Source: Saccostrea cucullata (lineage: Eukaryota). From it: 64,000 nt of DNA. Of this stretch, positions 15,770 to 41,600 are shown piece after piece (the stretch's first letter is position 1; the number at the start of each line of letters is the position of its first letter). The notes below the pieces were generated by a model, which was not told where the DNA came from, searched no databases, and worked only from the letters and a program-made list of their open reading frames with translations. Where the stretch lies: contig NW_026928365.1 in NCBI RefSeq assembly GCF_032062105.1, positions 1-64,000 on the forward strand. The letters are read 5' to 3'. The position numbers were made by a program, and so were the translations under genes.

Positions 15770-16460
15770 TTAATGTTTCTTTTCCCTTATGTGTTTATAC
15801 AAGGAGCTGAAATATTTATAAACTTTTCCACAAGGACAAATGTGCTTTTTCTGCATATGTTGAGCCTGTCTATAGCGGAATAAATCTTGTTTATCGGAAA
15901 ATGTTGCAAGGCAATTTTTACATTTCAGCTCCACTTTCTTGCTACAAACTGTCTCGCGCTCCGCTTTCTTGTAACGATTCCCAAATTTCTTACCACACGA
16001 ACTACAGACATACGGCGTAACTTTTGTATGAACGTTCAAGTGATCTTGGTATCTTGAAAAACATGTACGTATAAACGTTTTACCACAGGACCCGAATGGA
16101 CATCGGTGTTTCACTGTGTCATTATTAATTTCATTGAGTTTTGCATGTTCGTTCATGTTGCCCTTGGTTTGGAATGTTTTGCCACAAGTTGTACACATAT
16201 GTCTTACATGTACGTCTTACAGAATGTTTGTCAGTGTTATGCTTTGTCGACTCCAACTCAGTACTGAAATACTGGGTACAGGTTGAACAAAATAGATGTG
16301 CTGTGTCACTGTGCGATTTCATATGTCTCTGTTAACTCCCCTTCGTCCTGTATTCTCTATTGCAGATGTCACATTTCAGTTTAGCTGTGTCCACCACCTC
16401 CTCAATTGATATATCCAAGAATGAACCGTCGGCGGGTTCTACAGGGTCTGACTATTCCAT
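15770..16460 (-). pseudogene. Multi-C2H2 zinc-finger pseudogene (~7 fingers)
   Basis: ME*SDPVEP...KLKCDICNREYRTKGS*QRHMKSH...CSTC...H...H, then a frameshift near 16200, then CTTCGKTF, CPFGSCGKTF..HLNVH, CSSCGKKF, CKNC, CPCGKVY..HIREKKH. Two in-frame stops and several lost His ligands. Confidence 0.85.
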
Positions 16461-16775: not shown

Positions 16776-17165
16776 TTTTTAGGTCACCTGAGTAAACTCA
16801 GGTGACCTATTGCTATCTGTTTTCGTCCGTCGTCGTGCGTTGTCCGTTAACATTTGAACATTTTCAGCTTCTTCTCTGCAACCACTCAACCAATTTCAAC
16901 CAAATTTGGTACAAAGCATCTATGGGTAAAGGGGAACAAAAATTGTGAATTTCATGGTCCCTGCCCCCCTGGGGCCTGGGGGTGGGGCAAAAACCACTAA
17001 AATTAATGCAATCTTTAAAAATCTTCTTCTTTACTCCTGGACATCAAGCAGGCAAAATGTTTACATGATTGTAATCAGCATTGAGTCCTCTACCAAAATT
17101 GTGAAATTCATGGCCCTGGGGTCAGGGGTTCTATTGCTAGGGCGGGGCTAAATAAGTATATAGTG

Positions 17166-17199
<34 letters not shown>

Positions 17200-18346
17200 G
17201 CTCCTGGGTATTAAATAAACGAACTAAGTGCATAGTTATGATGAGCAAGAGTGCCTCTACCAAAATTGTGAATTTTATGGCCCCAGGGTCGGGGGTTCTG
17301 GTGTTAAGGCGGGGCTCTATAGATTATATAGTGAAAATTCATGAATTCTTTGAAAATCTTCTTCTCTGCTCCTAGGTATTAAATAAACTAACTAAGTGCA
17401 TAGTTATGATGAGTAAGAGTACCTCTACCAAAATTGTGAATTTTATGGCCCCAGGGTCAGGGGTTCTGGTGTTAGGGTGGGGCTCTATAGATTATATAGT
17501 GAAAATACATGAATTCTTTGAAAATCTTCTCTGCTCCTGGGTATTAAATAAACTTACTAAGTACATAGTTATGATGTGAAAGAGTGCCTCTACCAAAATT
17601 GTGAATTTTATGGCCCCAGGGTCAGGGTTTGGGTGTTAGGGCATGAATTCTTTGAAAAAATTTCTTTTCTGCTCCTAGGAATTAAATAAACTAAGTACAT
17701 AGTTATGATGAGCAAGAATACCTCCCCCAAAATTTTGATTTTATGGCCCTAGGGTCAGGGGTTCTAGTGATAGGGTGGGGCTCTATTGATTATATAGTGA
17801 AAATACATTAAATCTTTGAAAATTTTCCTCTCTGCTCTTGGATATTAAGCAGATGAACTACCTATGTAGTTATGATGAGCAAGGACCCTAATCTTCCAGA
17901 ATTGTGAATTTCAAGGCCTCAGGTACAGGGGTACCATAGGGGGAGGAGGGGGGGGGTGTACTTATATACTCAAACTGGATGAATTGTTTGAGATCTGCTC
18001 CTTGGTATTAATCAAATATTTTTGAAAAGCAAGGGTGTCTTTTCAAAAATTATGCAATGTGTGGATCTAGGCCTAAGGGTCAGGGGTTCATGAGTGATAG
18101 GGGCATTACTGATTATTGCTCAATATTACTGATTACTTGAAATGCATTTTTTGTTCCCCCACCCTGCCTATGGGTATTAAGTAAACAAACTAAGCAACTG
18201 CTAAGTGTATTGTTATGATGATCAATGGTGCCTCTTTCAAAATTGAGAATGCCATAGCATCTGGCTTAAAACATGAATCAAATTAAATCACTGGAAAGTT
18301 GTTGCATAATGCTCAGGTGACCTATAAGGCCCATGGGCCTCTTGTT
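16776..18346 (+). mobile_element. Complete HINE/Helentron with ~167-bp tandem array
   Basis: TTTTTAGGTCACCTGAGTAAACTCAGGTGACCTA left module; right module CTCAGGTGACCTA + GGCCCATGGGCC + TCTTGTT. Repeat units degrade towards the 3' end. Confidence 0.92.
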
Positions 18347-19042: not shown

Positions 19043-19638
19043 AAAACAAGATGTGTTTGTGAAACACTATGCGCCCGGCGGCAACAAAAATCGAAAAAGC
19101 TATTTTTAGCATTCAAGCTTAGATAACAGTCAAGGTCACAAGGTCATTGACCTTGGTGTCATTTGAAAGAACTTGATGAGTGGATTATGCACACCAAATA
19201 TGAAGTCTCTATCTGTTATGGTTCAAAAGTTATGGTGAAGGTACGAAAAAGCTATTTTTAGCATATAGGTCACAGTCAAGGTCACCAGGTCATTGACCTT
19301 TGTGTCATTTGAAAGAACTTTATTAGTGTAGTATGCATACTAAATATGAAATCTCTACCTTTCATGGTTCAAAAGCTATGGCGAAGGTTAAAGTTTGCAG
19401 ACAGAAAAGTTATTTTTAGCATATAGGTCACATTCAAGGTCACAAGGTCATTAATATTGGTGTTATTTGAAAGCACCTAATTAGTGAAGTATGCATACCA
19501 AATATGAAGTTTCTACCTTTCATGGTTCAAAAGTTATGGCGAAGGTTAAAGTTTGGAGACAAACAAACATACAGACAGACAGACAGACAGGACAAAAACA
19601 ATATACGCCTCGGATCTATCGATCCGGGCGCATAAAAA
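19043..19638 (-). mobile_element. Complete HINE/Helentron with ~3 internal repeats
   Basis: Subterminal IR TATGCGCCCGG / CCGGGCGCATA, palindrome GTGTTTGTGAAACAC, (CAGA)n microsatellite. Confidence 0.88.
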
Positions 19639-19974
19639 TGAAATCAGAGAATGGCAGTCTACAAAGGAAGGTTAAGACAATTCAAAGACGCGTTCAGACA
19701 CTGAATAAGCAGACCCTTCAATTCAAGGAAGCAAAAGCATGGATTGTATGGGAGTATCAGACATGTACGAAAACAACTATTGATGAGCAATCATGTAATT
19801 ATAGATGGAGTAAAAAAAGATAAGGAAACGTGTATGGACAAGTCGTTGGGAATCTTCTTGAAAAGAACAGATGTATTTCTAAGCTTAGTAAAGCAAACTT
19901 TCATATCCTCTTGACTCACGTACAATGTAGGTTATCTGTTGCATCGGTATTTCTTGCCTCCTTTTCTTATTCTT

Positions 19975-20710
19975 AAGAAAACACTTGCTGTGGCCTTCAA
20001 CTCGACCTTCAGATATATCGACGACGTATTGTCAATTAACAATGGTAATTTCCATTCATACGTCGATACGATATATCCAGGAGAGCTTGAGATAAAAGAT
20101 ACCACAGAGTCTGACACATCTGTTTCATACTTGGATATTTTACTTGAAAAAGACGTTAATGGTAACCTAACAACCAAGTTATATGATAAACGTGACGACT
20201 TTAACTTTTCTATCCTCAACTTCCCTTACTTATGCAGCAATATACCTTCATCATCTGCATACGGAGTGCATATATCTCAGTTGATTCGATACGCAAGAGC
20301 ATGCTCTACGTATGAACAATTTCTGAAACGAGGTAAATTATTGACAAACAGGTTGATGAAACAAGAATATCAGCAGTCTCGTTTAAAGTCATCATTTCGT
20401 AAGTTCTATGGTCGATACAATGACCTTGTCAGCAAATACAATTTATCATTGAATCAAATGCTGACTGACGTTTTTCATACCAATTGTTAGTCCATTATTT
20501 ATACACTGAATTGACGACGGTTTTTTCTCTTATTTCACGATCATGACAATGAGCACACGACGGGTGTGACCGGTCAGCAGGGGTTGCTCACTCCTCCATG
20601 GCACCTGATCCCACCTCTGATGTTTCGGAGGTCCGTGTTTGCTCTGCTTCTATTTTGTATTGTTTTATGAACTTTGATATTGAATACTGTTCGTTATCTC
20701 CATATCCTTC
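19975..20710 (+). mobile_element. 5'-truncated Penelope-like retroelement (RT C-terminus + 3' UTR), Naiad-like
   Basis: Open frame FRYIDDVLSIN...SYLDI...TKLYDKRDDFNF...SQLIRYARACS (PLE RT motif C onward and thumb) stops at 20490 with no C-terminal GIY-YIG, as expected for N-terminal-endonuclease PLEs. Confidence 0.85.
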
Positions 20711-20998
20711 TTCTTACTATGTTTCCGAACTCTTTCACTTATTTTCCTATTCCTTTTCTTTTGGACAGAGAATAAAAGAAAAGCTACTATAATAAATTCT
20801 ATTGCCTCTCCTTCCTTTTCATTCTCTCTCTGTTTATAGTTTTTTTGTATTTCTGCACTCGTTGTAGCCATACTGGTCTGAAAACTGTTCAAAAAATATA
20901 TTGAAACATACGTTACTTAAACATTAAGAATTGAAACATCAGAAATAGAATGAAAATTGAAAATATGTTTAAGCAGGTAAGTTTCTTTTTAAATCGAA

Positions 20999-22640: not shown

Positions 22641-22904
22641 TTTTTTTATTAGTTAAAAATAGATGGAGAAAACTCTTACCAAAATTCAAGGTCGTAAATT
22701 AGGACACATCCCAAACTTACATGCTAATACACATACTAATAAATGAGAATTTTGTCAAAATATATCAACACCTACACATCTGATATGTATTCATTTCCAT
22801 TGAATCTTGCGAGTAGGGATTGAATACCTTAGAAAGTGCCATATATTAATTCTTGATATTTTTCCTATATAATTTATTTATAGCGAATATAACGAATGTT
22901 GTAA

Positions 22905-23522
22905 GATATCACAGAATCTGACACATCTGTTTCATATTTGGATATTTTACTTTAAAGACGTTAATATATATATCTAACAACAAAAGCTCTGTGATAAACG
23001 TGACGGCTATAACTTTTCAATCGTCAACTTCCCTTACTTATGCAGCAATATACCTTCATCACCTGCATACGGGGTTTATATCTCTCAGTTAATTTCAAAC
23101 GCAAGAGCATGCACTACGTACATGTATGTACAATTACTAAAAGGAGTTAGATTATTGACAAACAAGTTGCCGAAACAGGAATATCAGTATTCTCGTTTAA
23201 AGTCATCATTTTGCAAGTTCTACGGTCGATACAATGACCTTGTCAGCAAAAACAATTTATCATTGAGTCAAAAGTTGAATGACGTTTTTCATATACTAAT
23301 TATAAGGCAATTTTTTACTCATACTGAATTGACGACCGATTTTTCCGTTATTTCCCGATCATGACAAGGAGCACAAGACAGGTGTGAACGATCGGCAGGG
23401 GATTCTCACTCCTCCATGGCACTTGATCTTATCTCTGATGTTTCGGAAGTACGTGTTTGTTTTGCTCCTTATTTGTATATTTCATGGACTTTTGAGCTTG
23501 AATACTGTTCGCTTTCTCCATA
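22905..23522 (+). mobile_element. Second 5'-truncated, frameshifted Penelope-like copy
   Basis: Colinear with 20095-20705, including the 3' UTR motif. Confidence 0.9.
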
Positions 23523-23579
23523 CAATTGTACATGTAATTTTGGAAGATAAAATATAATTTAAAGATCTGTAGCATACTT

Positions 23580-40364: not shown

Positions 40365-41600
40365 AAAGTGAAAAATGGTGATAAAGAACAACTCCTGTCC
40401 AACTAAACAACACAGATCTGGAGCAGAACAAATACGAACCTCCAAAATACAGAGTTCCCAGACCCTTGCCGTGGAGAAGTGAGCATCCCCTGCCGACAGA
40501 TCACAACCACCGTTTGCTCCTTGTCCTGATCTTGAAAAAAAAGTAAAATTTACATCCATAATCAATATTCAGGCCCAACAATTAGTATGAAAAATGTCAG
40601 TCAGCTTTTCACTTAACGATGTTTGTACATGTAGGTTCCATTGCAGACAAGACCACTGTATCGATCATAAAATTAAAGTTCGTTAGATTTCGGACCTAGT
40701 TAAACACTTCGGAAGAAAAGCGTATTTCTTTTCAAGGTGCGTTTTTACCGACCATAAATCTCACTTTTAAAAAAAAATATTTACTTTCAATTTTCAAAGA
40801 TCTAAAATATAATGTACTTAGGACCAAATATGATGACCTTTATTTTACAGCTATTTGATAAGTATCAAGATGCTTAAAATTCTCCGTATGCAGGTGATGA
40901 AGGTATATTGCTTTATTAGTAAGGGAAGTTGACGATTGTAATGTTCAACTCATCACGTGTATTATAGAGCTTGATTGTTAGAACCTCTCTTCTAAAAATA
41001 GGGTGCTTTACTTTTAAAAAATATTTGTTTTTCAGGAAAAATATGCTTATTTATTTATTTTTTTTTTAATCTATCTCAAATTAAATCATCTTTATTAAAA
41101 GAAAGTAAATCAATGTCATACCAATACTATTATACTTTGTACATATATCTGGGTAAGAAAAATAAAGAGCTGAGGGAGTCTCTACCTGTCTTCTCCTCCA
41201 ATCTTAATGGGGGTAAATCAATTCATCATTTTTTCGAAACGATTTTTTTTTAGAGAAATGTAACAAAATAAAGCTGTCTATTACTAAAATTTTAGTCTGG
41301 TATTTTGTTTTATACATCTTTTTTTTTCAAAGTCCGTTACGTGTCGTAACGTGTCACAAGGGTTACATTTGACGTCATTTTTTTTTTAAATAAAATACCC
41401 AAATGTGAAACAGATGTGTCAGACTCTGTGGTTTCTTTTATTTCAAGCTCTAAACTGAGTTACCCCGGGTATATCGACTCAACTTTTGAATAAGATTATC
41501 TGATGTTAATAGATAATACGTCATTGATATATCGAAGTGTCGAGTTGAATATTATTTGATATCTTCTTCACATGGAAGATTTTTGGAATAAATTATTTTA
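40365..41600 (-). mobile_element. Inverted, interrupted Penelope-like copy (3' part 40365-40670; RT core part 41395-41600)
   Basis: Reverse complements align to the 3' UTR/ORF end and to the YIDD-to-YLD region of the 19975 copy. Confidence 0.8.

Follow-up and report, generated by a model that had tools for sequence, protein, structure and literature searches.

The question raised by this locus is what a Penelope-like element (PLE) of the Naiad type carries at its 3′ end, the place at which canonical PLEs have a hammerhead ribozyme. We analyzed a 64,000-nucleotide (nt) stretch of the Saccostrea cucullata genome (contig NW_026928365.1, positions 1 to 64,000; hereafter the window), in which the end of a reverse transcriptase (RT) gene is followed by a block of ~100 bases. 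An earlier reading of the letters alone (the sequence-only reading) had put this block ~60 nt past the RT stop, and the stop codon indeed lies at 20488–20490, with copy 1 of the block starting 60 nt 3′ of it. The same reading took the block for an uncharacterized, functional RNA with covarying pairs that Naiad-type PLEs carry at their 3′ end; that description held, the RNA being found across families and in at least three bivalve genomes and matching no Rfam family. On the basis of comparisons made among natural copies, we conclude that the block, here called the module, is a sense-strand RNA structure under selection rather than a product of chance, and that its ~100 bases are best described as a four-arm junction made up of P1, Pal1, P2 with Pal2 at its apex, and P4. 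The parts are listed below in the coordinates of copy 1, with the evidence for each.

20551–20560, + strand: P1 5′ strand, GAGCA followed by CACGA, partner 20634–20644 (seven of seven modelled pairs changed on both sides)
20561–20566, + strand: J1, CGGGUG, near-invariant and complementary to CACCUG at 20602–20607 (no double changes in 60 sequences)
20567–20576, + strand: Pal1, an arm of 10 nt that is a perfect palindrome, TGACCGGTCA (palindromes at the same site in other families)
20577–20580, + strand: J2, a conserved GCAG linker (alignments)
20581–20585, + strand: P2 5′ strand, GGGUU (family majority GGGAU), partner 20608–20612 (RNAalifold, de novo)
20586–20607, + strand: P2 apical region, comprising GCUYAC, a pyrimidine run, Pal2, and CACCUG at 20602–20607 (nearly invariant across families)
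20596–20601, + strand: Pal2, CCAUGG (variants across families)
20608–20612, + strand: P2 3′ strand, AUCCC (RNAalifold, pair counts)
20613–20632, + strand: P4 side hairpin, ACCUCUGA, loop UGUU, UCGGAGGU (covariation)
20634–20644, + strand: P1 3′ strand, CGUG, U, a UU bulge, and UGCUC (covariation)
20645–20705, + strand: A+T-rich 3′ tail, ending ...CUCCAUA at the insertion boundary (five-copy alignment)

The folding energies of the copies taken singly were no better than those of shuffled sequences (z from −1.3 to +0.3), so the case for structure had to be comparative. RNAalifold, applied to 23 sequences that MAFFT had aligned blind to structure, recovered P1, Pal1, P2, and P4 de novo, with compensatory change in 16 of 18 pairs. 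In the same alignment 91.1% of cells were paired, compared to 31–46% when the 3′ partners were slid, and 23 of the 25 pairs had changed on both sides, a number equalled in none of 500 shuffles. The model alignment of 60 distinct sequences gave closely matching values, with 90.3% of cells paired against 32–45% for slid partners; its double-changed cells numbered 207, and those of the shuffled control 51. A blind mutual-information scan of all column pairs placed those of the supported fold at the top. The paired columns contained 86 G·U and 44 A·C combinations; neutral decay would not predict this excess of G·U, which therefore points to selection acting on the sense-strand RNA.

The helices contribute to this result in different ways. 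The outer part of P1 covaries between families, with GAGCA/UGCUC in some and GGGCU/AGCCC in others. P2 had 95–96% of its cells paired and double changes in all five of its pairs, and P4, in which 20613–20620 pair with 20625–20632, showed covariation in five of five modelled pairs of the 60-sequence alignment and in four pairs of the 23-sequence MAFFT alignment while its length and loop varied between families. Measured against the supported fold, copy 1 itself is mismatched at A20560 and T20584. Approximately 95% of the family reads have G at the first position and A at the second, each of which restores one pair (G20560 with C20633); A20560 and T20584 are mutations private to copy 1.

The fold drawn in the sequence-only reading proved to be partly right. 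Its closing stem (20551–20560/20634–20644) and its side hairpin (20613–20620/20625–20632) correspond to P1 and P4, and many compensatory changes across families support both. Its two inner stems, GGTCAG/CTGATC and AGGGG/CTCCT, gained no support, as they paired no better than shuffled columns (66.0% of cells compared to 65.9%, and a covariation score of 0.095 compared to 0.096, in the 60 sequences). Instead, TGACCGGTCA (20567–20576) forms the palindromic arm of its own, and the CTGATC side belongs to the pairing of GGGUU at 20581–20585 with AUCCC at 20608–20612. The proposed pseudoknot TGCT:GGCA also failed, being nested within the P2 stem, almost invariant, and overlapping the second palindrome. 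The differences among the five window copies that had been read as keeping the pairing are mostly the decay of dead copies of one family and not the result of selection. The sequence-only reading had further proposed that subfamilies be compared across bivalves and that Rfam be scanned; the comparison revealed heavy covariation among families, so that an origin by chance was not upheld, and the scan matched no known RNA family.

Some pairings that we considered were set aside. P3 (GCU/AGC) was kept in the model but is no longer trusted; the G-to-A variants that had seemed to break it are explained as extensions of Pal2. RNAalifold and the pair counts gave the P2 pairing in place of an AGCA/UGCU hairpin and a GGAA/UUCC pseudoknot stem, both of which were abandoned. 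A helix between CGGGUG and CACCUG was drawn in every single-sequence minimum free energy fold of the 12 families, and these two strings may form a pseudoknot stacking on P2, for which they are at present a modelled candidate.

The two palindromes are the most distinctive part of the module. At the Pal1 site we found 15 distinct perfect 10-nt palindromes, all of even length, and eight more with one U·G wobble, and most of the remaining sequences were one change away from a palindromic relative. The arm is 8–10 nt long, and its letters differ by family while its self-complementarity is kept through the center. No pair of columns in the entire alignment covaries more strongly than the two adjacent ones at its center, whose bases complement each other in ~95% of sequences (UA 30, AU 18, GC 3, CG 2). 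Adjacent bases cannot pair inside one hairpin. The pairing at Pal1 must for that reason be between two molecules, between two copies in one transcript, or within duplex DNA, and the closure of the arm by U·G, but not C·A, in many families favors RNA over DNA. Pal2 reads UCCGGA in most families, with UUCCGGAA, GUUCCGGAAC, UCGCGA, and UUUGCAAA as variants; by genome it is CCAUGG in S. cucullata, CCUAGG in Ostrea, and CCCGGG in Pinctada, and at least six independent palindromic variants were counted. The predicted homodimers were 6–17 kcal/mol more stable than two monomers. Self-complementarity is thus retained while the letters change, as is expected of an RNA dimerization element, the dimer itself being a prediction.

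The module extends well beyond the window. When metagenome contigs were scanned with an alignment of the RT C terminus, 80 loci with 45–76% protein identity were obtained, and in 54 of these the structure model placed the module on the coding strand just 3′ of the RT match; in most of the others the sequence ended too early or the open reading frame (ORF) continued into another domain. The module begins 50–180 nt past the RT stop and thus lies close to the 3′ terminus of the element or directly at it, and it was also found 3′ of the RT gene in Ostrea edulis and Pinctada imbricata. The linker and tail that flank it diverge, and the module itself does not. By these sequence comparisons it is conserved across divergent families and in at least three bivalve genomes.

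The identity of the host elements was read from their proteins and their insertion habits. Four proteins of ~1000 residues (P0244, P0282, P0315, and P0327) have a GIY-YIG nuclease domain at ~130–225 and an RVT_1 domain at ~640–855, and metagenome loci L137 and L138 encode two such GIY-YIG/RT proteins with the module 123 and 176 nt past the stop, respectively. The order of N-terminal GIY-YIG and C-terminal RT in these module-carrying relatives indicates the Naiad layout. The L137 module directly adjoins a TA/TG microsatellite flank and is for that reason regarded as truly 3′-terminal. Both L137 and L139 have upstream direct and inverted module copies, and full-length elements carry the module 5′ of the ORF as well. 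The arrangement at L137, with its microsatellite and its upstream direct and inverted copies, matches the published description of Naiads (PMC8557442). Among Naiad traits we found the lack of a hammerhead core, high copy number, 5′ truncation, tandem and inverted copies, and A+T or (TA)n targets; residue traits described for the group are a DKA variant of the DKG motif, a CxC motif, and an IFD-like insertion between RT3 and RT4 (PMC8557442).

No known RNA accounts for the module. Scanned against Rfam 15, the whole window gave no match at the gathering score, and nothing relevant was found at E values up to 10 for the window copy or up to 1 for six other families, the scans returning only noise and microsatellite-like miRNA matches. 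In particular, Rfam gave no match for HDV-like (hepatitis delta virus-like), twister, twister-sister, pistol, hatchet, hairpin, or VS ribozymes, and the helix order of the module is incompatible with the nested double pseudoknot of HDV. The sequence-only reading had noted the lack of a hammerhead CTGANGA...GAAA core, and a pattern scan agreed, with five matches in the window compared to 4.4 expected by chance and none inside the copies. We found no tRNA-like gene (ARAGORN, Rfam) and no match to the selenocysteine insertion sequence element (Rfam); the core string occurred in no paper of the library searched and was absent from bacterial, archaeal, and viral contigs. The paper that defined Naiads reported canonical hammerheads to be absent, with only occasional partial cores (PMC8557442). 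By these sequence searches, the module is an undescribed RNA in a clade that lacks the hammerhead of its relatives.

What the module does was approached by weighing several models. To the first, in which the module serves the RT as a 3′-terminal platform for target-primed reverse transcription and its palindromes in addition pair one transcript with another, we assign about an even chance. The invariant junction and loop nucleotides would form the platform bound by the telomerase-related RT, and priming would start at the 3′ end of the RNA. The two self-complementary tips would pair between molecules, since neighboring bases at the center are unable to pair inside a single hairpin, and transcripts of the same family would be held as dimers or chains. 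A second RNA tethered in this manner could present its 3′ end once the RT has arrived at the 5′ end of the first and so permit a template jump, and such a jump would yield a truncated copy ahead of a full copy, that is, the pseudo-long terminal repeat (pseudo-LTR) typical of these elements.

Several observations weigh against this account or against the structure on which it draws. Pal2 is mostly invariant, and the support for its pairing is modest though above that of the controls. CGGGUG and CACCUG never covary, and of the changes seen in them 14 preserve the pairing and 24 disrupt it. The transcript data were three raw RNA-seq runs from oligo-dT libraries, which are ill-suited to detecting cleavage ends, and they contained no defined starts or ends of molecules over the copies and no cleavage site; their depth was equal in both orientations and so gave no direct sign of sense-specific transcription. 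Taxonomy is known for the three bivalves only, and many of the metagenome rows may be dead copies. The permuted GIY-YIG/RT order was read in relatives; the reading of the window family covers the C-terminal part of its ORF.

The second model makes the module a new self-cleaving ribozyme that processes the 3′ end or the pseudo-LTR in place of the PLE hammerhead and is active only once two copies have joined by their palindromic arms, as has been suggested for dimeric hammerheads. We consider it unlikely, though it is the main rival. The module stands in the same place as the canonical PLE hammerhead, in a clade without one (PMC8557442), its invariant junction and loop nucleotides sit beside freely covarying stems, and dimer-dependent PLE hammerheads are typified by just such a short palindromic arm (PMC4209133); a few partial copies also start inside the module. 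However, no Rfam 15 ribozyme model matches even at E values up to 10, and the hammerhead core is missing from the copies. The RNA-seq lacked a pile-up of molecule ends, in libraries poorly suited to showing one, and truncated copies begin at scattered positions, with no accumulation at a single base, in the small sample available. A new class of ribozyme also has a low prior probability.

A third model, which we rate as rather improbable, assigns the module a role at the level of the transcript (stability, nuclear export, localization, or granule assembly), exerted through host proteins together with RNA–RNA pairing by the palindromes. Kissing-loop dimerization occurs in some localized mRNAs, the module lies in the 3′ untranslated region (UTR) with its structure selected on the sense strand, and two self-complementary tips would permit multimers. 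The 3′-terminal position is nevertheless kept in every family, in one case adjoining the target microsatellite, which fits priming better, and no host mRNA is known with the module, which is also absent from Rfam.

More doubtful still is a site acting at the level of DNA, either a promoter within the pseudo-LTR or a protein-binding site in which the palindromes serve dimeric DNA-binding proteins. The pseudo-LTR of Penelope and Chlamys carries a transcription start and an internal promoter (PMC8557442), the module is found upstream of the ORF in full-length elements too, and perfect palindromes are typical of protein sites. Unlike a protein site, however, the stems swap letters freely yet stay complementary, and the letters of the palindromes differ between families; A·C is accepted half as often as G·U, and Pal1 is closed by U·G, not C·A, in many families. 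Least probable by far is the absence of any function, with likeness due to recent copying of one element and compensating changes due to chance: the genome copies are nearly all of one family with differences that are mostly decay, and single-sequence folds are no more stable than shuffles, but conservation across families and species, accompanied by heavy covariation that stood out against both types of control, a module that stays the same while its linker and tail diverge, and the mutual-information results refute this reading as far as computation goes.

Within the window, searches with a model derived from the letters of the copies, structure left aside, returned exactly the five copies that the sequence-only reading had located and no others, and the structure covariance model agreed. 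These and the RT remnant are as follows.

19939–20490, + strand: C-terminal part of the RT ORF, from the YIDD motif to the stop, in a 5′-truncated element (ORF list)
20546–20650, + strand: module copy 1 (covariance model)
23364–23468, + strand: module copy 2, decayed, in an element copy at 22900–23523 (R2 72 bits, nhmmer)
37384–37488, + strand: module copy 3, in a severely 5′-truncated insertion at 37372–37544 (R2 71 bits, nhmmer)
40420–40524, − strand: module copy 4, strongly decayed, in an element copy at 40375–40675 with more fragments to 41548 (R2 39 bits, nhmmer)
4184–4280, + strand: module copy 5, old, with P4 partly deleted, in an element copy at 4016–4336 (R2 53 bits, nhmmer)

Element homology of the copy at 20 kb spans ~19996–20705 by self-BLAST and nhmmer. 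The RT ORF of the window family ends ~170 residues past YIDD, and its C-terminal part has 5382 protein relatives, one of them named from O. edulis. Intact ORFs of 1027 residues with the same C terminus occur elsewhere in the S. cucullata genome, and the element copies in three further contigs were all decayed. A random 200-kb sample of the genome held 16 module matches, ~1 per 12 kb, which extrapolates to tens of thousands to ~100,000 copies in the 1.17-Gb genome, in agreement with rough counts. Most genomic copies are 5′-truncated and decayed, and nearly all belong to one family in which the differences are mostly decay. The flank upstream of the 37.4-kb copy matched no copy of the element and had one weak match elsewhere in the window. 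In the small nhmmer sample the 5′ ends of truncated copies were scattered with no single-base hotspot, which is a weak test for cleavage.

The RNA-seq data also bear on the 3′ boundary of copy 1. Read depth was zero beyond 20715, and the flanks seen in the reads were A+T-rich and heterogeneous. In run X20, 132 reads leaving the element at 20706 shared one flank that is not that of the window, with 95% agreement; this shared flank (loose ends at 20706–20712) suggests that a single copy at another place in the genome is strongly represented.

Other features were noted around the element and in the sequences searched. Just upstream of the 20-kb element, self-BLAST offsets revealed tandem-repeat arrays at 16999–18011 (period ~167 nt) and 19092–19561 (~152 nt), and on the − strand at 15770–16198 lies an ORF of 142 residues with several C2H2 zinc-finger-like repeats that is possibly an exon of a host gene. 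Matches to GIY-YIG in many contigs of the genome fall in ORFs of ~870–940 residues, often in inverted pairs a few kb apart (for example, C606:7674–7928 on the − strand and 12506–12760 on the + strand), and these constitute a second PLE family separate from that of the 1027-residue ORFs. The random genome sample included long open frames of 1265 residues (L035:6205–9999, −) and 958 residues (L033:6973–9846, −) that may be other mobile elements or genes. Among the metagenome loci, the RT ORFs of L097, L098, L103, L105, L106, and L118 continue >230 residues beyond the thumb with no stop there, and the module was not found in the available sequence of these six. In L105 and L118 the extension is a ubiquitin C-terminal hydrolase domain (UCH, PF00443), an unusual fusion to an RT. 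At L062:2–1210 one frame joins a LysE-type translocator (PF01810) to an RT fragment, probably through chimeric assembly or through an insertion read through in frame. Following the complete module of L138, positions 3467–3670 contain a duplicated tail of ~110 nt that ends in a second, 5′-truncated half module; the half module begins in the apical loop and may correspond to the "tail" extension reported for insertions of PLEs.

Several known RNAs invite comparison with the module. The canonical PLE hammerhead, of the min-HHR or type I HHR kind, likewise lies close to the 3′ end, which places it in the pseudo-LTR, on the sense strand, with stems that vary strongly by family, and it too has a short palindromic arm through which two copies can pair (PMC4209133). 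Such hammerheads have a short helix III with a palindromic loop; they are believed to function as dimers and show poor cleavage in vitro (PMC4209133). The module differs in lacking the CUGANGA...GAAA core and any Rfam hammerhead match, and in having four arms rather than three and other invariant nucleotides, and self-cleavage is in its case hypothetical. The 3′-UTR recognition structures of site-specific and "stringent" non-LTR elements (for example, the R2 3′ UTR and the 3′ stem-loops of long interspersed nuclear elements, or LINEs) resemble it as 3′-terminal structured RNAs linked to target-primed reverse transcription and in having a shape more conserved than the sequence. They share no sequence or model similarity with the module, whose binding by the RT is a proposal and whose element class has, in contrast, a telomerase-like RT and a GIY-YIG nuclease. 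Elements of the R2 and LINE types are not known for two self-complementary tips like those of the module. RNA dimerization sites, such as the kissing loop of the retroviral dimerization initiation site and the palindromic loops of some localized mRNAs, are also short self-complementary sequences on a stable scaffold whose letters differ between lineages while self-complementarity is kept. In the module, however, the whole Pal1 arm and not just a loop is palindromic, there are two sites per module, the dimer is a prediction, and Naiad elements have no capsid or packaging step. As to the pseudoknot and three-way junction of telomerase RNA, the module is likewise a multi-helix junction with a possible pseudoknot, and the PLE RT is the closest relative of TERT (PMC8557442), but we found no homology or shared motif and no evident template region in the module, and its candidate pseudoknot lacks covariation support.

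These comparisons lead to a broader suggestion, which we advance with considerable reserve. The RNA at the 3′ end and pseudo-LTR of PLEs may need the pairing of transcripts rather than cleavage, in which case the two evolving Naiad palindromes, borne by a rigid junction, and the palindromic helix III of canonical hammerheads would perform the same task, bringing a second 3′ end to the RT for template jumping and the formation of tandem pseudo-LTRs; or else the module would be a new class of dimer-activated self-cleaving ribozyme. Naiads rank with the most abundant retroelements found in bivalves and many other invertebrates, and they thrive without the hammerhead found in every other endonuclease-bearing PLE (PMC8557442). 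A covarying RNA at the hammerhead position provides a concrete, mutable object for asking which task the hammerheads of PLEs perform and what has taken their place in Naiads. The module is a candidate for a new Rfam family and a sensitive marker for annotating the 3′ ends and solo fragments of Naiads, and it opens RNA dimerization, RT docking, and self-cleavage to study at the bench in the closest relatives of telomerase.
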